Sequence record: NC_031010.1
Length of the DNA: 64,000 nucleotides
Strand: one strand, 5' to 3'
The notes under the pieces are model-generated. The model did no database searches and had not been told where the DNA came from. It saw only the letters and a list, made by a program, of their open reading frames with translations. Below are positions 16,214 through 33,653 of this stretch, one piece after another; position 1 is the stretch's first letter, and every line of letters begins with the position of its first letter. Made by a program: the position numbers and the translations under genes.

Positions 16214-18025
16214 ATGGTCAAAGAAGTTACTCCTACTCAAACTGCACAGTCTACTACTACTCAGCAGACTACTCAGACTACCCAGTCAGCTCCACTGAAC
16301 ACCGGCGCAAGCTCGCTGGACTTCGGTTCTCTGGGTGCAGCAGTTACGATGGACCAGGCCTTCGGCTGGCAGTCCGTCTCTTCCATGGCGAATGATTTCG
16401 TCACCCGTATTGCGAACCACGCCAAAGAAAATCCAAACGCTCGTCTGGACCGTTTCAAAGTTGGCATGGTCGAAGCTATCTCTCAGTCTGACTTTGCCTC
16501 CGGTGCCTACGTTGCGCTGCAGTACAAAGACCAGTGGCTGTACGGCATCATCCTGTTCGAGAAAGGCGACAGCATGCGTGTTGTGGTTAACAACAACGTT
16601 GAGTCGTACTACACCGTTGCCGGTCTGGTAAACAAAGACGTGCTGCGCAGCGTTGAAGCGGCAGCCGGTGAAAAGCATGGCATCGGTAACATGGCCTTCA
16701 TCTCCCTGAACGCTGTGCCGGATCTCGGCAAGCAGATGGACGATGCATGGGCACTGCAGCTGATGGGTCAGATGCTGACCGGTATCGCTGGTCGTATCGC
16801 CGGTGCACTGGGCGACGCTAAGCTGTCTAAATCTGACCGCTTTGCCATCAACGTGGCTGGCGTTCCATCTGGTGTTGTAGTTGATACCAATGCTCACCCA
16901 CAGCGTGCTGGTTTCGCACTGTCTGTGAACCATCAGCAGCAGACCCAGAACGAAGCAGGCCCAACCCTGCTGAGTAATGGTGGTGACCGTACACTGCCTA
17001 AGACCGTTGCAACTGGTTTCGTTAACCTGCGCTACACCGGTCTGAAGCCACAGGTTCAGGGCGTTACTGACCTGAAACAGCTGCAGGGCGAAGTGGTGGT
17101 CTCTCTGGTCGATTCTCAGATGGCCGGTTCTAAAGCACCGTACGAACGTCACCTGCTGGCACTGGCTGCCTTCGCTGACATTGCACAGATCGGTGGATGG
17201 CGCAGTGAGCTGAAGAACTCTCTGAACAACAGCGACCGTAAGTTCTCTGCGGTAGCATCGTACCTGAGCTGGGGCGGTGAGAAAGTTGATGTTAAGAAGT
17301 TGGACGGCAACCGCGATGCAATCGACATGGCACTGGATACCTTCTGCCCGGCTCAGGCTGCGCTGGTTGTATCACATCGTGCAGGTAACGGTCTGGGTGG
17401 TCTGTCAACTCTGCTGGCAGAAATCGCAGTGGGCAACGTGAACTCTCTGGCACAGCTGCTGAACATCGCAGACGCCATGTTCCCGGGCGACACCAAGTTC
17501 CGTAACATCCTGGCTACCAATCTCGGCGGCGTGACTGAAATCAAAACCAGCCACATCGTTGCAGCTGCAGTACCGACTATCGCTGGCCTGTACGTAGGTA
17601 CCGGTGAGAAGCGTTCTGCTGCTGATATGGATCTGGTATCTGTGCTGACCCACCTCGGCGACAAACAGTCTGATGCGTACCGCTACATGCATGCGCAGTC
17701 ATTCTCTAACCGTCAGATGGATCAGAAAGAACAGCGTATCTACCTGCTGAAACTGGCAGCGTCCATGTACGGCGGTCGTGAGTTCCGTCCTACTGGCGAA
17801 TCACTGGATATGGCTATCCATCCGGTGTTCGCTAAGACTGTACTGGATTGCGTACGCGGTTCTGTATCTGCATGGCAGCTGAACGGTGTCGAAGCGCACG
17901 ACGCGATGACCAACAGCCTGTTCACCAACAACGGCAACGAAACCTTCGTTCTGTCTGGCGGCGGCAGCAATGGTTCATTCAACAACTTCGACCTGAGCCT
18001 GACTACCAACTCCTTCACCCTGTAA
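16214..18025 (+). CDS. chmA: chimallin, major phage nuclear shell protein
   Basis: 603 aa, low-complexity T/Q N-terminus, highly biased codons, immediately upstream of the nvRNAP beta' N-part, the conserved chmA position; assigned by size and synteny. Confidence 0.8.
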   Translation: MVKEVTPTQTAQSTTTQQTTQTTQSAPLNTGASSLDFGSLGAAVTMDQAFGWQSVSSMANDFVTRIANHAKENPNARLDRFKVGMVEAISQSDFASGAYVALQYKDQWLYGIILFEKGDSMRVVVNNNVESYYTVAGLVNKDVLRSVEAAAGEKHGIGNMAFISLNAVPDLGKQMDDAWALQLMGQMLTGIAGRIAGALGDAKLSKSDRFAINVAGVPSGVVVDTNAHPQRAGFALSVNHQQQTQNEAGPTLLSNGGDRTLPKTVATGFVNLRYTGLKPQVQGVTDLKQLQGEVVVSLVDSQMAGSKAPYERHLLALAAFADIAQIGGWRSELKNSLNNSDRKFSAVASYLSWGGEKVDVKKLDGNRDAIDMALDTFCPAQAALVVSHRAGNGLGGLSTLLAEIAVGNVNSLAQLLNIADAMFPGDTKFRNILATNLGGVTEIKTSHIVAAAVPTIAGLYVGTGEKRSAADMDLVSVLTHLGDKQSDAYRYMHAQSFSNRQMDQKEQRIYLLKLAASMYGGREFRPTGESLDMAIHPVFAKTVLDCVRGSVSAWQLNGVEAHDAMTNSLFTNNGNETFVLSGGGSNGSFNNFDLSLTTNSFTL

Positions 18026-23348: not shown

Positions 23349-23411
23349 TTTTTTACATTACCGGGTCTTAATTTGAAGGTAAGACCTAGAGTATTTACGA
23401 AGGATAAAATA

Positions 23412-24116
23412 ATGAACGCACAAATCTTTAACGAACGCACGCTCTTTCCCCTGTCAGAGCCGGATAATCAGGGCAAGCAACGCAAGTTTAACATTGAGCC
23501 GAACGTCTTCAATGGTGACTGCGAAGGCTTGAAGTTTTCTTACAGCTGGGGCAAAGGCGAAGGCGTGTACTTCGATGCGCCGTATGGCACCTGCCGTCAG
23601 ATTATCGAAGCGTTCCATGACGCACTGAAAAAGCCTGAGAAGTCTACCCTCTCGTTTGAGAACGGTCGTGGTAACAAAGCTCCGAGCGTTGTGCACGTGG
23701 GTCGCGGTGAAGATCTGGTTCCGTTTATGGCACTGTCCGGCGAAGTCAACGGCCAGAAGCGCACCAAGAAGTTCTTCTTCTACCCGGCGAAAGGTTTCCG
23801 TATCCTGCGTGACGGTCAGCCACTGAGCGATCTGGAAATCCGTGAGCGTTGTGCCCGTTCGTTCATCACTGATTTCGAACTGTTCCTGCAACACCTGATT
23901 GAAGTCTATAAACCGCGTGATTTCAATAACGCCGGTGGCTTCGGTAAAGGTGGTGGCGGTGGTTATCAGCGTGGCGGTCAGTCACAGGGTAACGGCAATC
24001 AGGGCGGTGGCTACCAGAACAACCAAGGTGGTGGCCAGCAAGGCGGTTATCAGAACAACAATAACAACAATCGTCAGGCACCGCCTGACCAGTCGTTTGA
24101 CGACATTATGCTTTAA
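23412..24116 (+). CDS. chmC: ChmC-like nucleus-associated nucleic-acid-binding protein (phiKZ gp67 position)
   Basis: Folded N-domain plus G/Q/N-rich disordered tail; directly upstream of the nvRNAP specificity subunit; assigned by synteny and composition. Confidence 0.65.
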   Translation: MNAQIFNERTLFPLSEPDNQGKQRKFNIEPNVFNGDCEGLKFSYSWGKGEGVYFDAPYGTCRQIIEAFHDALKKPEKSTLSFENGRGNKAPSVVHVGRGEDLVPFMALSGEVNGQKRTKKFFFYPAKGFRILRDGQPLSDLEIRERCARSFITDFELFLQHLIEVYKPRDFNNAGGFGKGGGGGYQRGGQSQGNGNQGGGYQNNQGGGQQGGYQNNNNNNRQAPPDQSFDDIML

Positions 24117-24248: not shown

Positions 24249-25862
24249 ATGAAAATCAAAAAGGTCAAAGACGAGATTACGATTTCGCGTAATGGTCAGA
24301 CCCTCACGTTCGACGGCCTGCCCGCCATTAACCGCAAGCGTAATACGATCCAGACCGATTTGAGTCGCGATGATTTATTGTTCCTCGAACTCGAACGTTA
24401 CTGGAGTACGCTGCCGGCAAAAAGTCTCGATGAGCTGTGGGAAGCTTACGAGATGGTTCAGGACTTAACTGCGGTCGATTCTTCTGTATTAGAAGAGCAT
24501 CTGCCAAAGGTCATCCGTGTGATTGACCGCTTGCACCCGCCTGAGGTGTTCAAGCAGTTGTACCCCATGAATAAGGTGTGGATTCCTGAGAAGCTCCAAG
24601 AGAACTTTGACGGCCTCCCGCCAAACTACCCGGAGGCGATGACCTATATCCGTCCGGAGTATTACGAACTGCTGATTGAGACCTTGGCCATCAAACCGTT
24701 CCTGCCGGTGTTTAACCTGCTGGGTGCGTATATCGGCGGTAAAGGCCTCTCTCAGGACACCAAGCGTAAAGTGGTGCTGAGTATGGTTCGTTGCTTCAGC
24801 GTCATCTCTGACACCGCTGTGGCGCGCTCTCCGGCCATTGATAAGCTGCGGGTGTTCCTGAACTGTCTGGTTGAGAAGTTCCAGCGGGAATCGAACAAAG
24901 GGATGGGTGGTACCAGCCTGTCGGTACTGGCGTCGGTTCGGGGTTACGGTTCGGATATGTTAGAAGAGTATCTTCTGGCGTACACCGTGGTCTACGTACT
25001 GGGGCTGCATCCAGTGGGGGCAGACTTCGCCACCGCGGATCTCAACGACAACAACACCATCTCGCAAATCTTCTACGCGATTCGCAGTGAAGTAGACGGT
25101 GGCTTTGCCTCTAAGATTTCTGGACAGTCGGTTATCTTAAAGCAGCACCCAAGCAACACGGTGTTTAATGGTGAGAAGGGTAAGACGAACGCCATTGACT
25201 TGGTGCAGGCACGTAGCCCCGCACCGGTGAAGGAGTTTGTCCGAACGGCGGTTGGGTTCAAAGATTACCGGCGCTTTATCAAGACATTGAACATCGACAT
25301 CGCACCGGCTACGGTGAAGACGTTGATTGATTCGATTCTGGTGAACCACACCGGACCTATCTACGAACTGCACGAGTGGTTAGTGGCAGCAGCCCTGCAT
25401 TCGAAAGCACATCGTCAGACGTACAAAGATATCGAAGTCGAATTCAAATACGGCATGGGTATCGCACAAGCCGTGTATCTGCATTACGGCATGTACGAAG
25501 TGGCGGCCTTGCTTAGCTGTCAGATGTTACCGGGCAATGTCTCGGGTCATCCCATCTACGCAATCGAGCCTGACATCAAAATTAAGATGGATAGATATTA
25601 TCCTCATGACTATCGCACAGTTAAAGGCGGTGGCAGCAATGAAAGTCCGGCACGTGAATCGTTGCGTCTTCTGTTAGACCAGCATATCGCGCCGTACTAT
25701 TTCAACTTCAACTGTACCGAAGAGGCCAGGGTACATTTGAAAAGCGACTCCACGACGGTGGAACGCATGCGGCTGGGTGGACGCATCCAAACGCAACTGG
25801 CCGAATTCTTGACCATCCAAGCCCGACGTAAGCTGGATGAAGTCGCATTCTTTGTATCGTAA
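24249..25862 (+). CDS. nvRNAP promoter-specificity subunit (phiKZ gp68-like)
   Basis: 537 aa at the conserved position between chmC-like and picA-like genes; no motif independently verified. Confidence 0.65.
   Translation: MKIKKVKDEITISRNGQTLTFDGLPAINRKRNTIQTDLSRDDLLFLELERYWSTLPAKSLDELWEAYEMVQDLTAVDSSVLEEHLPKVIRVIDRLHPPEVFKQLYPMNKVWIPEKLQENFDGLPPNYPEAMTYIRPEYYELLIETLAIKPFLPVFNLLGAYIGGKGLSQDTKRKVVLSMVRCFSVISDTAVARSPAIDKLRVFLNCLVEKFQRESNKGMGGTSLSVLASVRGYGSDMLEEYLLAYTVVYVLGLHPVGADFATADLNDNNTISQIFYAIRSEVDGGFASKISGQSVILKQHPSNTVFNGEKGKTNAIDLVQARSPAPVKEFVRTAVGFKDYRRFIKTLNIDIAPATVKTLIDSILVNHTGPIYELHEWLVAAALHSKAHRQTYKDIEVEFKYGMGIAQAVYLHYGMYEVAALLSCQMLPGNVSGHPIYAIEPDIKIKMDRYYPHDYRTVKGGGSNESPARESLRLLLDQHIAPYYFNFNCTEEARVHLKSDSTTVERMRLGGRIQTQLAEFLTIQARRKLDEVAFFVS
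25590..25609 (+). promoter_or_regulatory. intragenic copy of the promoter motif upstream of picA
   Basis: GATAGATATTATCCTCATGA, identical to 29292-29311. Confidence 0.6.
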
Positions 25863-25876
25863 GGAGTAATTAATAA

Positions 25877-27550
25877 ATGAAATTAGTCAACATGTTGATG
25901 TACCCGGTCTATGGTATCCCAGAGCAAATCCGTCGTCGTATGGCGTACAGCTCTTCTCTCTCAGCGATGGATGAACTGAAAGAGATTGTTTCGCGTGAAG
26001 GCCGTAACGCGATTGCAACCCCAATGTATCAGCAGGCGCTGTCTGATGTGGTTTCCTTTGACTCAACGCCAAACGGTATTGAGCGTCCACTGGTTAACGT
26101 GGGCGAAGGGAACATGGTCGACCGCTTTAACTACAACAGTGACAGCACCGATGTGTATAACTTCATCGCTGTCCTGGTGGCTGACCCGGTTAACGATACC
26201 CGCAGCCAAGAAACCCAATTCATCATCACCGGTTATACCAGTCGTGCGGAGCAATCATTAACGGGCTTACTGCCTGATGACATGGTGCTTTATATCAACG
26301 ACGTGTTCGGTCTGCAGCAGACCTACGGTGCGCCGGATCTGTTCGGTCAGCGTCAGGTTATCCCGGGCAGTGAGCGCATGGTGGACAACTACGTGTTGTC
26401 GCAGGCACTGAGTGTTGACAACTATCAGGAATCGACCATCGATCTTATCTCGATTGCAAAATCGGCAGATATGGTGCGTAAGATTCAACTGGGTGCCAAT
26501 GAGCAGTTCGTGCCAGATGCCAACACCATCTTCTCACCGGTGGCGTCAACGCAGGCGCAGCTGATGTCTTCTCGCCTGACCAACCCGGGTGAGTTCGTCA
26601 GTGCCATGTCAACGAGCTATCTGAAGTCGCGTGGTCAGGATGACACACTGACCGCAGTGGATTCCTTCTTTGACTCTGACGGCGCAAACGGCGTGCAGCG
26701 TGAACTGAATGGCATGGGTGTGATGCGCAGCTTTGCGTCATTCCCGTTCATCCGTTCGCTGCGTGAATCGCTGCAGCGCAACACCGGGCTGGGCAGTGAA
26801 GCGTGGCGTAATGCCCAGAAGGCAAACTTCCGCCTGATGGATATCCGTGCGGCTATCTCAAACCCTGAGAAGCTGAACGTGGATATCAGCACCTCGCTGC
26901 ACGATGCGTTCATGAACCGTACCGGCATTATCGAGAAGACCGATAACTGGCTGTCCATGAATGATTACTCGACGCCGGGCTCGCTGGTTGCGTTCGACAT
27001 CGCCATGCAGCTGTCTCAGGTAATGGCCCGCAGTAAAGTGGGTGCCTGTGCTATCACATTTGACAACATGATGGCTGACTTCGTGACGGAACCGACACTC
27101 ATGGTGAACCCACGTTCTGTCGAAGGGATCATGAAGACGCAGTTACCTGCCGCGTTAGCACAACAGTTGCTGTCGGATCTGAAGCGTTTGTTCATCACCG
27201 TGAGCAAGCACAACAGTCTGCGCTTTGAAGTGTTTATCGTTGCACGTCTGGGCACGGTTAACCGTATTGAGATCAGAATGGATGGCGACCTCGTAAAAGA
27301 GTTCTTCACCTTCGCCTCCTTTATGTCTAACCGCCTGCACATGGGTAACACCACTGACTTGAAATACGTAGGCCAGCTGGCAAAAGACACCGAACGCCTG
27401 TTCTCCAGCATCGACGAAGCGTACGTGGATAACGAACGTGCTGTTGGTAAGAGCAATCTCCAATTCAACATTCCTGATGCACCGGGTACGGGCAACGCGG
27501 GACTGGGCGGTCTGGGGTTATCTTCCGACTTCGATAACTTCAAACTCTAA
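25877..27550 (+). CDS. picA: PicA/Imp1-like nuclear import protein (phiKZ gp69 position)
   Basis: 557 aa, AAGGAG RBS, immediately after the gp68-like gene; assigned by synteny. Confidence 0.65.
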   Translation: MKLVNMLMYPVYGIPEQIRRRMAYSSSLSAMDELKEIVSREGRNAIATPMYQQALSDVVSFDSTPNGIERPLVNVGEGNMVDRFNYNSDSTDVYNFIAVLVADPVNDTRSQETQFIITGYTSRAEQSLTGLLPDDMVLYINDVFGLQQTYGAPDLFGQRQVIPGSERMVDNYVLSQALSVDNYQESTIDLISIAKSADMVRKIQLGANEQFVPDANTIFSPVASTQAQLMSSRLTNPGEFVSAMSTSYLKSRGQDDTLTAVDSFFDSDGANGVQRELNGMGVMRSFASFPFIRSLRESLQRNTGLGSEAWRNAQKANFRLMDIRAAISNPEKLNVDISTSLHDAFMNRTGIIEKTDNWLSMNDYSTPGSLVAFDIAMQLSQVMARSKVGACAITFDNMMADFVTEPTLMVNPRSVEGIMKTQLPAALAQQLLSDLKRLFITVSKHNSLRFEVFIVARLGTVNRIEIRMDGDLVKEFFTFASFMSNRLHMGNTTDLKYVGQLAKDTERLFSSIDEAYVDNERAVGKSNLQFNIPDAPGTGNAGLGGLGLSSDFDNFKL

Positions 27551-27568: not shown

Positions 27569-28906
27569 ATGAACATTTTAGACTTCTATACTGGCCAGAT
27601 GGGTTCGTGGGGTTTTGACCGTGATGGCGATAAGTTCGTCTATCGGGATGACAAGACCCCAGCGTATTTCACGTACAATAAAGTGCGTCGTCGTCTGGTG
27701 CTGCCAACCACGGCCATGCTGAAAGCGGGCATGGAAGATGAAGACGGTACCGAGTGCCATGCGTATCACCCGCTGTGCGAATCTGTGATGTACGGCGAAT
27801 CGGGTACCAACCGTTTCATGAAGAAAGCCATCATGAACCAACTGTGGCTGCGTTCGATTGAGCTTATCGAGTACGTACTCGATACAGCCGCCGAAGGTAA
27901 GAAGGTGCGTCTGGCGGGTTACACCAACTGGTTAGCCGGTATCTGCGAAGGGATTAAAGACCCGAAGCTTGATAAGGTGCTCCAGCAAAGCTTCACCACG
28001 CTCATGAACTACGTGCGCGATAACATGGATGAAAAGAAACGTCTGCAGCTGTTTATCGCAACGGATCTGGTTATCGATGGGGTGAAGTACGTGCGTGCAG
28101 CGAACTTCCGTCACTGCTTTGAAGAAGAAGGCGAAGACGGAACCGCAACGTACTTTGGTGCAACCCTGCGCCGTAAGCAGGATAAGGTGATTCTGCATCG
28201 CCTGCTGACTGCGGTGTTTGGCTGGTATCCACCGGTCACGGGTTCTAATGATGACCGTCCGTACTTCGGTTGTCTGGCACGTGGTTGGGCGAACTATGTC
28301 ATCAACTACAACCAGATTGTCCGGGGCTTAAAGGATCACACGCCACTGCGTCCACTGGACGATGAGTGGATCTCAGAGCTGGACTCGCTGGAGAAGTATA
28401 ACGATAAAATCCAAACGCTGCCGTATAACGTTGGTCCGCGTGGGGAGAACGAGCAGGATACGTCTGCTCGTGAATATCGTCTGAAGCCATCACAGGGCCA
28501 CATCGAGAAAGCGGCACCCACTGCATCCAGCAGTGAGGAACCAGCGAAAGATGACCCGATGGCATTCTTCTCACGGCATGGCGTTGCCCGTCGCGGAAAC
28601 AACTCTATCCTCGCGGCACCGGACCCGTCTCGCATGACACCGGTACAGCAGGCAGAGTACGAACGTACGGGCCGTGTCAATGCACAGGGTGAAACCATCA
28701 GCAGCATGTCACTGGCATCGGCTGTGGGTAACAACACCACGCTGAACACCAACAACGGTGGCAGCTTGCTGAGCAATAACAACGGCGGTGGTCTGTTGGG
28801 TGGTGGTTCATTACTGGGCGGTGGGTCGCTCTTGGGTGGCGATAGCAACAGCGGGTCATTGTTAGGCGGGTCATCTAACAACGGCATCTGGGGCTTGGGC
28901 ATCTAA
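27569..28906 (+). CDS. conserved core protein (phiKZ gp70 position) with Gly/Leu/Asn repeat tail
   Basis: 445 aa; C-terminal GGSLLG repeats. Confidence 0.75.
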   Translation: MNILDFYTGQMGSWGFDRDGDKFVYRDDKTPAYFTYNKVRRRLVLPTTAMLKAGMEDEDGTECHAYHPLCESVMYGESGTNRFMKKAIMNQLWLRSIELIEYVLDTAAEGKKVRLAGYTNWLAGICEGIKDPKLDKVLQQSFTTLMNYVRDNMDEKKRLQLFIATDLVIDGVKYVRAANFRHCFEEEGEDGTATYFGATLRRKQDKVILHRLLTAVFGWYPPVTGSNDDRPYFGCLARGWANYVINYNQIVRGLKDHTPLRPLDDEWISELDSLEKYNDKIQTLPYNVGPRGENEQDTSAREYRLKPSQGHIEKAAPTASSSEEPAKDDPMAFFSRHGVARRGNNSILAAPDPSRMTPVQQAEYERTGRVNAQGETISSMSLASAVGNNTTLNTNNGGSLLSNNNGGGLLGGGSLLGGGSLLGGDSNSGSLLGGSSNNGIWGLGI

Positions 28907-28908
28907 GC

Positions 28909-28947
28909 AAAAAAAATAAAGGGGTCGCAGTGGCCCCTTCTTTTTTT
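28909..28947. terminator. bidirectional terminator
   Basis: A-run, AAGGGG/CCCCTT stem, T-run between convergent genes. Confidence 0.75.
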
Positions 28948-29337: not shown

Positions 29338-31557
29338 ATGCAGTCGAATGTCGAATTTAAGGGCGTATCCGCCGACCGTGAACCGTTAATCGATCACGTT
29401 TCTGGTTCGCGCGCAGCAATGGTTGGTGGTCATATGAAATCGGCGGTACCGATTGACCATCCAACACCCTCCCCCCATTTTACCGGAGCTGATTCCGAGT
29501 ACGCGAAGTACATGTTCAATGACATTATCGAAGACGATGGCGAAGTTGCCACCTTTGACGATAAAGGTCGCCAACGTCGTGCTGTGTTTGCCCGTCATGC
29601 CAAACGCGGTGATCCGAATGTGTTGCAGTATGCCATCTTCTTTCGCCGTAGCGAAAAGGGTGCCGGTACGCAGCACAAGACGATGATTGATTTGGCGATG
29701 ACCAGTAACTACACCCATCACGATCATATCTTCACCTCAGAGTTGCGTCCGACCGATAAACTGCGTGGCATTGCCCGTGGTGAAATCAAAGAGGTGTTGC
29801 GTGATGATGTGCTGACCGAATTCAATGCGGTTCAGGACGGTGAGCTGGTTGACGGTGTGGCACTGCCCACGGTTGCAATGTCACATCCGGACATTATCGA
29901 GGACTCCTACACGATTTCTGAAACTGCGGCACATCTGATGCACGGTTGGGGTTATCGTGAGATAATGTTATCGCTACGTGAAGACGAGTATCTGCTCGAC
30001 ACGTACGGCACCTTTATTAATGGTGTGCGTCGTCCACAGTATTTCCCGGAATACGGACAGGCGATTCGTGATGACGGTTTGGTGATTGCTGCTCGTCGTC
30101 ATGACCCGCTCTACGCGGCAATTGATTCTCACTTAGGTGAGACCATGCACGCCAGTCCGTTCTTTGACCATTGTGAGTACGTGGATGCAGACCCGGAGCA
30201 TTACATGCGTCCGAGTGAATTCAACGGCAGTCGCGTAATTGACATTCAGGTCTGGCGTGATGAGTCGTCGATTAACAACGGACAGAACAACATCCGTTGT
30301 ACCACAGAAAACAAAACGGTGCTGGATCTCTACGCCGGTGCACTGAAAGATTTCTATCGGGAACTGGTGCGCTTCTACTTTACCATGAGCAAAGACGACA
30401 ACATCGTCTGGTCGCCTAAGGCAGCCGAGCTTCTGGATAAAGCGTTCGCCTCGGAAACCTACGAAGTCTATTCGGAGTTCCAGCGTGAGATGCGTCGTGA
30501 GATTGATGAAGCCGTTAAACGTGGCGAGTACAAACGTGACCAAGCGGACACGCGTATTCTGCAGCGCTTAAAGGAGCCGGTTCAGCGTTCACTGAAAGAC
30601 CCTATCAACACGTACACCGTGAAGATTGTGGTACGCTACCCGATTCCGGTTACGGTCTCGTCCAAAATCACCGACCGTTCAGGCACCAAGGGTATCGTGG
30701 GTCGGGTGTTGCCTGACGATCAGATGCCAATTAACAAACTGGGCCAGCGTGTACACGTCATTCGCTCTCAGAACGCCGTGGTACGTCGCTCGACCTATTC
30801 CGGATTATTCCACATCTATTGGTCTGCGGCCAGTGAGCAGTTGAAGCTGCGGCTCAAACCGATGCTGGAACAGGATCAGGTGAATGAAGCGTTTGATATT
30901 CTTATCGACTATCTCTCGCGCTACAACATCGACTGGGCGAACTACATGCAGGAGGAGCACACAACGGAAGTGCAGCGCGTGGAACTCTTCAAAGAGATCT
31001 TCGACTTCACCATCCGTATTTGGCTTCCGCATGAACTCGATACCACACCGATGGACATCGTACACAATCTGGGTGAGTATGCGCCACAGAAATCGGAGCT
31101 GCTCATTACCAACTACGACGGTGTGCAGGAGTGGACGAAGAACAAATTCTACGTGGGTCACGTGGAAACCCTTCGTCTGGATAAGACCGGTCGTGAGTTC
31201 TCGTGTATCTCCTCGATGCACTTGAACTACCTCGGTACCATCGATGCGTCCCACGCAGGCCGTGGCGGTTATCCGATTAACTTCTCTGCGAAGAAGTGGA
31301 TGGGGGAATCCGAACGTCGTCTGTTATCCGGCTACGGTAATCTGGCGGATGAGGTGCACAACCGTGCGAACTCAAACGTGGTGCACCGTACGGTCGTGGA
31401 GGCGATGTACGAATCAGACACGCCAACTAACCCGGGGTATATCATCGACAGGAAGAAATTCCCACTCGGTGAATCTCAGGTGGATAAGATGATTCGTAAC
31501 ATTCACCGTTGCGAAGGTTTTGAATTGATTAGACCAGTCCGGGAGGATGCAGAATGA
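29338..31557 (+). CDS. non-virion RNA polymerase beta C-terminal subunit (phiKZ gp71-73-like)
   Basis: RAAM..HM, SKITDRSGTKGIV (cf. GDK..RHG.KG) and K.MGESE motifs. Confidence 0.9.
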   Translation: MQSNVEFKGVSADREPLIDHVSGSRAAMVGGHMKSAVPIDHPTPSPHFTGADSEYAKYMFNDIIEDDGEVATFDDKGRQRRAVFARHAKRGDPNVLQYAIFFRRSEKGAGTQHKTMIDLAMTSNYTHHDHIFTSELRPTDKLRGIARGEIKEVLRDDVLTEFNAVQDGELVDGVALPTVAMSHPDIIEDSYTISETAAHLMHGWGYREIMLSLREDEYLLDTYGTFINGVRRPQYFPEYGQAIRDDGLVIAARRHDPLYAAIDSHLGETMHASPFFDHCEYVDADPEHYMRPSEFNGSRVIDIQVWRDESSINNGQNNIRCTTENKTVLDLYAGALKDFYRELVRFYFTMSKDDNIVWSPKAAELLDKAFASETYEVYSEFQREMRREIDEAVKRGEYKRDQADTRILQRLKEPVQRSLKDPINTYTVKIVVRYPIPVTVSSKITDRSGTKGIVGRVLPDDQMPINKLGQRVHVIRSQNAVVRRSTYSGLFHIYWSAASEQLKLRLKPMLEQDQVNEAFDILIDYLSRYNIDWANYMQEEHTTEVQRVELFKEIFDFTIRIWLPHELDTTPMDIVHNLGEYAPQKSELLITNYDGVQEWTKNKFYVGHVETLRLDKTGREFSCISSMHLNYLGTIDASHAGRGGYPINFSAKKWMGESERRLLSGYGNLADEVHNRANSNVVHRTVVEAMYESDTPTNPGYIIDRKKFPLGESQVDKMIRNIHRCEGFELIRPVREDAE

Positions 31558-33653
31558 AAGGGTGTCCTGTTCACATTCGCGATTTAAGGATGTTACCTGC
31601 GGAGAAAGTCTGGAAGATGCGCGGTCGTTACGACGTGACCTTCGATGATGGCGTGACCTTACCGGTGTCTTCACGACACGTTAAGTTGAGTTGGCCATAC
31701 TGGGCTCTGTCGCGTTACTATCCGCAAGTCTCGACACCCTCGTCTCTGTGCTTTAAACCGGGTGATGTGTCAACGGATGACCGTCACATTGACTTCATGT
31801 CGATTGCGGCCGTGCTGGCACGTGAGGCCGGTGTTGATCTGGGGGATACGCGTTATATCCTCTCGCAGCATGTGTACGCAGATGCTTTTAACTTAACCGT
31901 TAAGCACCTGCTGCCGTATTGCACCACGATTGACATCGATACCATGCGTGACATCTACGACCACCCGGACTTCCAGATTATTCTGCAGTGGGCCGTTGAG
32001 CACCCAACGGGTTACGACTCGGAAGGTAACGACAAAGTTGAAGATGCCTATCAGATCATCGAAAAGATACTGCTGCTTGACCCGAACCTCTCCATGAACC
32101 CGTTGGCGATGTCGGTGAAAGACGGTACCATGAAGATGAACCAGATACTGCAAGCGTACGTGCGCGGGAAGACGTCAGAGATTGACTCGCGTGTCTACAC
32201 TAATCAGGTTTGGGAAGGTTTCTTCAACGGTCTGCACAAACTGGCTTCACGTCTCAAGGAAGCGGGTGCCACCTCGCGTTCGCATCTGTATAACACGGAT
32301 AACATCGCCGAAGCGGAGTACGGTTCACGTAAGCTGCAGCTGGTAGCCAACGTGCTCATGAACTTCAGTTACGACGACTGTGGTACTACAGATGCACACG
32401 AGTTCACCTTCACCGAGCTCGAACATCACAAGCAAGCGTTCAAAGCCATGAAAGGCATGCGCTATCGCTTTGAGAACGAGGGCGGGCCTTGGCGTCGGTT
32501 TGAACCTGAAGACTTTGAAAAGGTGAAAGACCGTCCGCTGTTGTTCCGCAGTGCGATGACGTGTAAGCATCTGGCCAAGCAAGGGCTCTGTGCGGGATGT
32601 ATGGGTGATCTCATCTTCAACCTGTCCGAAGACACCTCGCCGGGTCACCTCGCCTCGACCTCTATCTCAGAGAAGGGATCGCAGGGCATTCTCTCGACCA
32701 AGCACTTAGACTTCCTGCGTGCGTTGCTGAAGTTAATTCTGACGCCACCGATGCAGCAGTATCTGGACAAGTTCGAGAAGGATTCCCAGAAAGGCTTGAA
32801 GCTCAAGGGCAAACCGCTGAACGGTGCGTGGAGCGAATACGAGCTGGTGATTTCTGATAAGCTGTATTCTGAGCTGAGTCAGATTGCGTACCACGAGAAC
32901 ATGGACGATGTCGATGAGACGGCGCTGCCGGAAATCAACGACCTCACGTTCCAGCGGTACGACAAAGAGGGCGAGTTGCAGTTCGAAGAGTCGGTGGATG
33001 CGCGTATGGGTGTGTGCGGTAACTTCTCGAAGGCGTTCTTACGTTTCTTCTTGAAGCATCGCGACAGCCTGCGTTTTGTGAAGAAGCTCGTTCACATTCC
33101 ACTGGCCCAATGGCACACCGCTCAACCCTTGCTTATCTACACCAACCGTTCTGAATCGATGGCAGAGTTCGTAGCCGGTCTTGAGACCAAGCTGCGTTCT
33201 GTTGCTGCCGATAAGAACGACGAAGCCGATGATGTTATCAGCGTCGACAACTCGGTGAAGATGAACAAGAAAGGCAAGGTGAAAACCTTAACGCTGGTTG
33301 AGATGGGTGGCGCAACTGAGCGGCAATGTACGTATGCGTTGTTTGATACCTTCCGTTACATCAGTCGTAAGCTTAACGGCGTCCCGATGTGTCACGTGGG
33401 TATCATGTTAGCGGTCTCGCGTGTTGAATCCCCAACCGATTCTTTCCCGGCGGTGGGCTTTGACCGTGAAGAAGCTAACGAGGTGAGCGGCAAACGTTTC
33501 GTGGATCACAACACCCTCATCGGGATTCGTAGTGGTGCACCGATGTTGCTGTTCCAAGGTCAACAAGACTACCTCAATAACGTCGGCTTCTGGGTAAATG
33601 AGAAACGTCCTGCCAGTCTTTATGATGGGGCGTTTCCTACGCTACCTAAGTAA
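31554..33653 (+). CDS. non-virion RNA polymerase beta' C-terminal subunit (phiKZ gp74-like)
   Basis: AEAEYGSRKL, DDCGT, RSAMTC...LCAGCMG Zn site, SQGILSTKH. Confidence 0.9.
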   Translation: MKGCPVHIRDLRMLPAEKVWKMRGRYDVTFDDGVTLPVSSRHVKLSWPYWALSRYYPQVSTPSSLCFKPGDVSTDDRHIDFMSIAAVLAREAGVDLGDTRYILSQHVYADAFNLTVKHLLPYCTTIDIDTMRDIYDHPDFQIILQWAVEHPTGYDSEGNDKVEDAYQIIEKILLLDPNLSMNPLAMSVKDGTMKMNQILQAYVRGKTSEIDSRVYTNQVWEGFFNGLHKLASRLKEAGATSRSHLYNTDNIAEAEYGSRKLQLVANVLMNFSYDDCGTTDAHEFTFTELEHHKQAFKAMKGMRYRFENEGGPWRRFEPEDFEKVKDRPLLFRSAMTCKHLAKQGLCAGCMGDLIFNLSEDTSPGHLASTSISEKGSQGILSTKHLDFLRALLKLILTPPMQQYLDKFEKDSQKGLKLKGKPLNGAWSEYELVISDKLYSELSQIAYHENMDDVDETALPEINDLTFQRYDKEGELQFEESVDARMGVCGNFSKAFLRFFLKHRDSLRFVKKLVHIPLAQWHTAQPLLIYTNRSESMAEFVAGLETKLRSVAADKNDEADDVISVDNSVKMNKKGKVKTLTLVEMGGATERQCTYALFDTFRYISRKLNGVPMCHVGIMLAVSRVESPTDSFPAVGFDREEANEVSGKRFVDHNTLIGIRSGAPMLLFQGQQDYLNNVGFWVNEKRPASLYDGAFPTLPK

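Follow-up and report, generated by a model that had tools for sequence, protein, structure and literature searches.

A sticker-and-spacer C-terminal tail on a gp70-family protein of Erwinia jumbo phage Kwan, and its likeness to the tails of ChmA and PicA

The gene next to picA in the Erwinia jumbo phage vB_EamM_Kwan (an open reading frame, ORF, at 27569-28906) encodes a protein that ends in a low-complexity tail, in which short Leu-Leu stickers are set in Gly/Ser/Asn spacers. The stretch analysed – hereafter the window – is the first 64 kb of the phage genome (KX397369), with identical coordinates. Judged by its globular domain and its position, the protein is the Kwan ortholog of PhiPA3 gp64, PhiKZ gp70 and Goslar gp173 (the gp70 family). 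Across related phages the sequence of the tail co-varies with the C-terminal tails of two proteins of the same phage, ChmA (chimallin, which forms the lattice of the nuclear shell) and PicA (also called Imp1). We tentatively read the tail as a multivalent element that resembles the ChmA tail and would serve for docking at the shell, a reading that we place a little short of even chances. The question addressed is what keeps accessory proteins in the chimallin lattice, and in what way proteins and mRNA get across it. The family itself is known; what is new is the sticker-and-spacer tail and its lineage-specific match to the tails of ChmA and PicA, of neither of which a description was found in the searched literature.

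The tail and its match to the tails of ChmA and PicA

Translation of the ORF ends in ...NNGGSLLSNNNGGGLLGGGSLLGGGSLLGGDSNSGSLLGGSSNNGIWGLGI, exactly as the first-pass annotation had it; the segment marked there (28751-28906) corresponds to residues ~395-445 together with the stop codon. The last 60 residues hold 20 Gly, 12 Leu, 11 Asn and 9 Ser, with a single charged residue (D425), a single aromatic (W440) and no Phe (72% G/S/N/T/Q, 27% hydrophobic). When this 60-residue tail was shuffled 200,000 times with its composition preserved, the probability of five [GS]LL[GS] motifs was p ~1e-5 and that of five LL pairs p ~0.0025. Tandem Repeats Finder returned zero DNA repeats between 28500 and 28950, and the five LL pairs are written with five codon pairs (TTG CTG, CTG TTG, TTA CTG, CTC TTG and TTG TTA). 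Because there is no DNA repeat, and because the codon pairs are all different, the repetition lies at the level of the protein and is not recent slippage. The sticker-and-spacer tail is thus genuine – given the shuffle result and the lack of a DNA repeat – and the Kwan tail is under protein-level constraint. A DNA tandem repeat or slippage as the source of the LL repeats was considered and rejected, there being no repeat in the DNA.

The ortholog set comprised 38 SPN3US-like and 11 distant sequences (individual orthologs are labelled P00xx). Every one carries 109-218 residues after the globular domain, with a low-complexity end: far from being absent in most orthologs, a long low-complexity C-terminus is found in 38/38 and 11/11. 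Among the SPN3US-like phages G/S/N/T/Q make up 45-72% of the last 60 residues and hydrophobic residues 15-30%, and charges are few; the main sticker is Leu in 32/38 and Phe in 6/38, and variants include LLG, LGG, SFGG and NPF. The likeness to nucleoporin repeats drawn by the first-pass annotation is literal in some of these sequences, P0035 having SLFG and GLFG and P0016 having SFGG repeats. The tail diverges faster than the globular domain (80/58/60% identity vs 96/84/85%) and has many indels, yet despite this divergence 11-17 hydrophobic residues are kept in the last 60. An aromatic residue is present in the last eight positions of 37/38 SPN3US-like orthologs, and in the 31 Leu-type tails 51/63 of the aromatics in the last 60 residues fall within those eight positions, where 13% would be expected. 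In more distant phages the chemistry is of other kinds: Met/Gln/Pro (PhiKZ, Deimos-Minion, SA002, Aphrodite1), Arg/Asp mixed charge (2050HW, Xoo-sp14, PhiEaH1), Gly/Trp/Arg (LucasX, FLC9) and Gly/Ala/Val (Noxifer). Conservation extends to the disordered, repetitive tail as a type, but not to a nucleoporin-like composition.

The C-termini of ChmA, PicA, ChmC, gp68 and the gp70-family protein were compared side by side for each phage, and exact 3-mers and 4-mers found within a phage were counted against permuted pairings, with one phage per close pair. The gp70-family tail has 29 4-mers in common with the PicA tail of the same phage, against 8.2 +/- 3.9 when permuted (p ~5e-5), and 14 with the ChmA tail, against 5.1 +/- 2.5 (p ~0.002); for 3-mers in common with ChmA the count is 62 vs 34.1 +/- 6.6. 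The disordered tail of ChmC, encoded at the same locus and used as a negative control, gave no excess (p 0.98 for 3-mers, 0.81 for 4-mers), and the C-terminus of the gp68-type nvRNAP (non-virion RNA polymerase) subunit showed no co-variation with the tail. The composition cosine between ChmA and gp70-family tails is 0.51 vs 0.00 +/- 0.09, and the tips of these two proteins score 5.6 vs 3.1 +/- 0.95 for permuted pairings (p ~0.008-0.017). The PicA tip does not resemble the ChmA tip beyond permuted pairings, because the general pattern is common to all tips. We regard the k-mer test, with its ChmC control, as stronger evidence than the composition cosines. At the level of sequence, then, the gp70-family tail co-varies with the ChmA and PicA tails of the same phage. 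It had been noted from the Kwan sequence that PicA and ChmA end in related low-complexity tails. The relationship of both to the tail studied here is borne out statistically by the k-mer and composition comparisons, and the end of PicA, ...GTGNAGLGGLGLSSDFDNFKL, is confirmed as such a tail; ChmA does carry ...LSGGGSNGSFNNF, but it does not end there, continuing to DLSLTTNSFTL.

Individual lineages illustrate the match. PicA and the gp70-family protein both contain GNSLL in Parshik, SGNSIL in Caitlin and GGGLGGGLGGG in Asesino, where in addition ChmA has IGSLDLGL and the gp70-family protein LGSLDGGL. In Derbicusvirus, ChmA has xPF(Y/F)N, PicA has F-x-F and the gp70-family protein has four NPF; in P0016 all three proteins have SFGS. 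P0036 pairs ChmA ...GGGNGFTW with gp70-family ...LGGGFTW, P0032/P0033 pair PicA ...TFNY/TFNF with ...SFNY/SFNF, and P0004 reads ...SSFNF in ChmA, ...DSFNF in PicA and ...GGFSF in the gp70-family protein. The three tails of Xoo-sp14 are alike in being Arg/Asp-rich. In LucasX/FLC9 the ChmA and gp70-family tails are Gly/Trp/Arg-rich; the PicA tails are only Gly-rich, with few aromatics. Of the 276 ORFs of Kwan, only three – the ORF at 27569-28906, ChmA and one 69-amino-acid (aa) ORF – combine a final 30 residues that are at least 50% G/S/N/T with an aromatic among the final eight; when Gly/Ser/Asn-rich segments were sought across the whole genome, ChmC and a handful of unrelated items came up as well. 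For the distant phages, Pfam PF25677 finds ChmA in 9/11, the exceptions being 2050HW and Aphrodite1. Gene conversion between the tails was also considered and rejected: the longest exact DNA matches give no hint of it, measuring 8.6-8.9 nt for tails of one phage and 8.2-8.3 nt for tails of different phages.

These data bear on the view that the tail is no more than a flexible spacer or entropic bristle, and that mutational drift in weakly constrained low-complexity DNA gave rise both to its repeats and to its likeness to neighbouring tails. Fast divergence with many indels, the great difference in chemistry between clades and partly positive composition controls from globular regions (below) are in its favour, but it sits poorly with the non-random arrangement of motifs (p ~1e-5) in different codons and outside any DNA repeat, with the stable hydrophobic content and the aromatic tip in 37/38, with the lack of co-variation of the equally disordered ChmC tail in the same genomes, and with the lack of gene conversion. 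We give it little credence.

Two other Kwan proteins, and PicA itself, carry related sequence. The orphan KWAN_126 (210 aa, no PHROG match; L028:37722-38354, KX397369 101722-102354) ends in TSSLLGGSSLLSPCGSSQSFRL, the same type of tail with SLL repeats and an aromatic tip, a hint that such tails could be portable modules. KWAN_94 (535 aa, phrog_8185; L028:15672-17279), which adjoins an RNA polymerase (RNAP) beta-like gene, has an internal linker of the same flavour, SGGLLGGGNTGTSILGAPNGGG... The tip of PicA is reminiscent of ChmA in some lineages: DFDNFKL in Kwan PicA vs SFNNFDL...SFTL in ChmA, ...SFNF in both proteins of the P0004 lineage, and ...NFKL in SPN3US ChmA vs ...FKL in the PicA of Kwan and Derbicusvirus. 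PicA may itself be anchored in the lattice by imitating the ChmA tail; no mention of the likeness of the two tips was found in the searched literature.

Proposed docking at the shell and competing readings

In PhiPA3, gp64 is expressed early and has no predicted function; fused to green fluorescent protein (GFP) it is found at the nuclear shell, it was recovered by proximity labelling and in ChmB pulldowns, and it belongs to the network of ChmA/ChmB interactions (Enustun et al. 2023, PMC10643120). PhiKZ gp70 was classed as a nuclear protein; it did not co-purify with Imp1/PicA, whereas gp67 did, and it was not recovered by import selections (Kokontis et al., preprint 10.1101/2024.03.27.586873). 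Goslar gp173 is also called nuclear, and a fragment of it serves as a nuclear-targeting tag (Goslar preprint). The nickname 'Taileboi' for gp173 appears in one preprint only, where it is not explained, and the protein goes unmentioned in the CRISPRi-ART supplements. The transposon insertion index of PHIKZ070 is 0.00096, compared with 0.0219 for the dispensable neighbour PHIKZ070.1 and 0 for the imp1 and nvRNAP genes (PMC12676376 supplement); PHIKZ070 is nearly devoid of insertions, as are the essential genes beside it. The family is probably essential.

The reading that we tentatively favour, a docking element for the shell, takes ChmA as its model. ChmA builds its lattice by laying its terminal tails on neighbouring protomers, as seen in structures of chimallin. 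A schematic of this arrangement is given in PMC10643120. The tail of the gp70-family protein would be a low-affinity, multivalent element that imitates the C-terminal tail of ChmA: with tails in ChmA's lineage-specific 'dialect', this protein and PicA would hold the lattice, or each other's tails, and would stay concentrated at the shell. Avidity would come from the repeated stickers and a defined contact from the aromatic tip, while the globular domain, with its invariant His-Pro-x-x-Glu site, would do the protein's own job. Two features expected of such an element are found: a flexible Gly-rich stretch with an aromatic or hydrophobic C-terminal tip, and lineage-specific co-variation with the ChmA tail beyond the ChmC control, which is to be read against shared ancestry and partly positive composition controls. 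From these likenesses we infer that the tail may dock physically on ChmA or PicA. If the tails do share the motif language of the ChmA tail, tail mimicry would be a way into the shell; this would explain a tendency of these proteins to be inactivated by fusions at their ends, and might make a portable shell-targeting tag possible.

Several observations weigh against docking. The PhiKZ protein is called nuclear rather than shell-bound and did not co-purify with Imp1 (preprint 10.1101/2024.03.27.586873). PicA has no low-complexity tail in Goslar, Deimos-Minion, SA002 and Aphrodite1, and where the PicA and gp70-family tips were compared, anchored at the C-terminus, the result is not significant (p 0.09-0.13). 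A search of the PDB with the Kwan ChmA profile returned no entry by sequence. Globular parts of PicA and ChmA also correlate with tail composition (0.25-0.32 vs 0.41-0.54), and because these controls are partly positive, the composition signal is in part a genome-wide or lineage effect. Finally, since the sequences are related by descent, the permutation p-values overstate independence; independent changes of tail flavour perhaps number 6-10.

The first-pass annotation had proposed a phase-separating gate or an adaptor for the phage nucleus, by analogy with the nuclear pore. As a gate, the tails – alone or with those of PicA and ChmA – would condense into a nucleoporin-like cohesive phase that selects proteins for import (or mRNA for export). 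The uncharged polar spacers with hydrophobic stickers suit this idea, as do the SLFG/GLFG, SFGG and NPF repeats of orthologs P0035, P0016/P0026 and P0027-31, the PicA tail of matching flavour, the gene's place within the PicA/ChmC block, the location of the PhiPA3 ortholog at the shell (PMC10643120), the condensates driven by the ChmC tail (PMC11077065), and the finding that a Phe-free GLLG//L phase separates and stays selective (preprint 10.1101/2022.10.14.512266). Yet ~5 stickers in 60 residues compare with tens of repeats in Nup98, and an engineered GLLG 52x12 domain failed to phase-separate at 10 uM, one more Leu in each repeat being needed (preprint 10.1101/2022.10.14.512266). Nor is the chemistry conserved, being Arg/Asp in 2050HW, Xoo-sp14 and PhiEaH1 and Met/Gln/Pro in PhiKZ, Deimos-Minion and SA002; gp70 was neither pulled down with Imp1 nor found in import selections (preprint 10.1101/2024.03.27.586873); and PicA lies in one or two puncta, whereas gp64 decorates the shell (preprint 10.1101/2024.03.27.586873; PMC10643120). 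Compared with cohesive Phe-Gly (FG) domains, the Kwan tail has the hydrophobic motifs in charge-depleted polar spacers and lacks both the high valency (five motifs per 60 residues) and, having no Phe, the Phe-Gly motifs. The sticker-spacer tail and the shell location of PhiPA3 gp64 thus stand from the earlier proposal; a permeability phase is not favoured with only five stickers in 60 residues, and nor is an adaptor that binds PicA, with which PhiKZ gp70 failed to co-purify. We consider the gate rather improbable. Much the same holds for a broader version, a long shot, in which the ChmA, PicA and gp70-family tails would interlock as a meshwork of hydrophobic stickers at a transport site of the shell: a convergent, miniature FG phase whose lineage 'dialect' would help decide passage. 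The nucleoporin analogy is attractive, yet on present evidence it is a minority reading, and docking of the 'velcro' kind fits better than a nuclear-pore-like gate.

The nuclear location of gp70 and gp173 admits two further readings. The protein may act inside the nucleus on transcription or mRNA handling, its tail being a disordered region of the RNA-binding-protein type that promotes RNA condensates, like that of ChmC. The gene lies between those of PicA and nvRNAP beta in every genome examined, and in other clades the tail has flavours (RGG/GW, Arg/Asp mixed charge, Gln/Met/Pro/Tyr) that RNA-binding proteins typically show. Set against this, the Kwan-type tail, in which a single residue out of 60 is charged, lacks the Arg, Lys or aromatic content that would suit RNA binding; the co-variation is with the tails of shell proteins and not with that of the RNA-binding ChmC; gp70 is outside the five described nvRNAP subunits; and the globular domain is unlike any nucleic-acid-binding fold in Foldseek and VIA searches. 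Of the features of a ChmC-type RNA-condensate tail, the Kwan protein lacks an acidic segment (it has one Asp), a known RNA-binding fold and co-variation with ChmC. We judge a role in RNA handling unlikely. The other possibility is that the tail is a cargo or targeting signal rather than an anchor: it would be the handle for recognising the protein itself and for carrying or threading it across the shell. Both orthologs do reach the nucleus, a fragment of gp173 is enough to bring a passenger domain into the Goslar nucleus, and the tail resembles PicA's own; but cargo is recognised through folded surfaces and not terminal signals (PMC11087766), the wording as to which part of gp173 is in the construct is ambiguous, and gp70 does not bind Imp1 in vitro (preprint 10.1101/2024.03.27.586873). 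This reading, too, we give little credence.

Protein architecture, family membership and gene neighbourhood

Membership of the gp70 family follows from matches of the globular domain, by hidden Markov model (HMM) and by hhalign, together with synteny. An HMM of residues 1-290 matches PhiKZ gp70 (8e-12) and Goslar gp173 (2.4e-17), along with nine more of the distant orthologs, each at E <= 3e-7; hhalign of the Kwan family against PhiKZ gp70 gives 96% probability over 237 columns. The SPN3US match, YP_009153326.1, is one of the gp64 homologs listed in PMC10643120. By tblastn and word search, orthologs are found in all SPN3US-like phages and, weakly, across Chimalliviridae. In several Salmonella phage SPFM records (P0038-P0042) the protein is scrambled, with permuted segments and tblastn matches in 4-6 pieces; these versions look like artefacts of assembly or annotation.

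An AlphaFold2 model of the protein, built with 38 sequences, has a predicted local distance difference test (pLDDT) score of ~90 over residues 1-280 and ~33 over residues 386-445. The linker between them has three short predicted helices, DPMAFF, TPVQQAEYER and SLASA (DSSP 332-336, 358-367, 382-385), and its S381 and L382 are nearly invariant among SPN3US-like orthologs. In the globular domain an F-H-P-x-x-E motif (H67, P68, E71) is invariant in 22/22 family sequences, and S78, R176, N248 and N287 are also kept in 22/22 or nearly so; together these residues form a candidate active or binding site. The region of the motif (residues 67-78) lies at 27767-27802 of the window, within a fold that has no match in the PDB: the best Foldseek hit has E 0.085, and the best in a wide VIA search (Z 6.0) is a designed helical bundle. 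A structure search of BFVD with the AlphaFold2 model matched only jumbo-phage orthologs, the ESM Atlas gave no usable match, a Pfam search of the protein matched nothing, and a sequence-profile search of the PDB with the family returned zero matches.

The features of the gene and its neighbours are listed in Table 1. The gene order is ChmC-like, gp68-like nvRNAP subunit, PicA, the gene studied here, small reverse gene, nvRNAP beta, and from gp68 to nvRNAP beta this order was found in 26/26 of the related loci in which that stretch was read: Goslar, PhiKZ, Deimos-Minion, Noxifer, 2050HW, LucasX, Xoo-sp14, SA002, FLC9, Aphrodite1, PhiEaH1, seven SPN3US-like phages and eight metagenomic contigs. 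The block corresponds to PhiKZ gp67-gp74 and Goslar gp176-gp171; the PhiKZ order gp67-gp68-gp69-gp70 is described in preprint 10.1101/2024.03.27.586873. Asesino gp39, to which Kwan ChmA is related, was identified as chimallin by GFP (PMC11724907). The PhiKZ counterpart of the small reverse gene (PHIKZ070.01) has zero transposon insertions in the trimmed table. The ChmC-like protein's tail finishes with SFDDIML, an acidic-hydrophobic tip that every relative read preserves as [FY]-D-[DE]-x-x and that recalls the C-terminal tips found on single-strand-binding proteins. Elsewhere in the phage, on the minus strand (L029:30511-31337; KX397369 143510-144336), are genes for two small proteins (142 and 129 aa, phrog_6085) that consist largely of Cys/Gly/Ser repeats (CSGGCSGSCG...) and adjoin two radical-SAM genes (KWAN_179/180); together they are a possible modified-peptide system in a jumbo phage.

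Table 1. Features of the gp70-family gene of Kwan and of its neighbours (window coordinates).
Feature	Position	Strand	Basis
Whole gene, 445 aa plus stop	27569..28906	+	ORF translation; phrog_3520, E 1.9e-128
Globular domain, residues 1-285; helical bundle and beta sheets	27569..28423	+	AlphaFold2 pLDDT ~90
Linker, residues 286-385; charged, mostly disordered	28424..28723	+	pLDDT 38-63
Low-complexity tail, residues 386-445; Gly/Ser/Asn spacers and five [GS]LL[GS] stickers	28724..28903	+	Composition, shuffle test, pLDDT ~33
Five [GS]LL[GS] motifs	28766-28771, 28793-28798, 28811-28816, 28829-28834, 28859-28864	+	
C-terminal tip NGIWGLGI, with the sole aromatic of the tail	28880..28903	+	Aromatic tip kept among SPN3US-like orthologs
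Terminator-like hairpin of 9 pairs with a T run after it, between the gene and the convergent small gene	28919..28939	+	
ChmA (chimallin), 603 aa	16214..18025	+	48% identity to Asesino gp39; Pfam PF25677 Chimallin in close homologs
ChmA C-terminal tail, ~residues 565-603, reads NSLFTNNGNETFVLSGGGSNGSFNNFDLSLTTNSFTL	17906-18022	+	
ChmC/Imp6-like protein, 247 aa; Gly/Gln/Asn/Tyr tail and acidic tip	23373..24116	+	phrog_3284; position matches PhiKZ gp67, Goslar gp176
Homolog of PhiKZ gp68-type nvRNAP subunit, by position	24249..25862	+	phrog_3209
PicA/Imp1 ortholog, 557 aa	25877..27550	+	phrog_3141; syntenic with PhiKZ gp69, Goslar gp174
PicA tail, last 21 residues GTGNAGLGGLGLSSDFDNFKL; same flavour as the tail studied	27485-27547	+	
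Small conserved convergent gene, 106 aa	28946..29266	-	phrog_3455; same place in all chimalliviruses examined
Two nvRNAP beta/beta'-like subunit genes closing the conserved block	29338-31557 and 31554-33653	+	Pfam RNA_pol_Rpb2_6; annotations of syntenic genes

Comparison with known systems

The closest relatives – PhiPA3 gp64, PhiKZ gp70, Goslar gp173 and SPN3US YP_009153326.1 – have a globular domain homologous to that of the Kwan protein, the same gene position between PicA and nvRNAP beta, a length of 426-514 aa and, in each case, a disordered C-terminal region of 109-218 residues. They differ in tail chemistry: whereas the tails of Kwan and the SPN3US-like phages are Gly/Ser/Asn with Leu or Phe, that of PhiKZ gp70 is rich in Met/Gln/Pro and that of Goslar gp173 in Trp/Met/Pro/Arg.

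The repeats of Nup98 (GLFG/SLFG) resemble the tail in their charge-depleted polar spacers and regularly spaced hydrophobic motifs, and some orthologs have literal GLFG, SLFG and SFG. Nup98, however, has ~40-50 motifs where the Kwan tail has ~5, with Leu-Phe in place of the Leu-Leu of Kwan; no transport receptors are known for the phage tail, whose chemistry is not conserved across the family. ChmC/Imp6 (PMC11077065) is likewise a nucleus-associated protein from the same gene block with a disordered, Gly/Asn-rich C-terminal tail, and it forms condensates with RNA, but its tail contains Tyr/Gln/Arg and an acidic end, with few aliphatic stickers, and it has an RNA-binding Whirly domain. The tail of ChmA has in common with the gp70-family tail a flexible, Gly-rich stretch that leads into short motifs of hydrophobic or aromatic residues, an aromatic or hydrophobic tip and lineage-specific wording; the difference is that in ChmA each motif occurs once, on a lattice-forming core, whereas the Kwan protein carries ~five degenerate copies on an unrelated domain.

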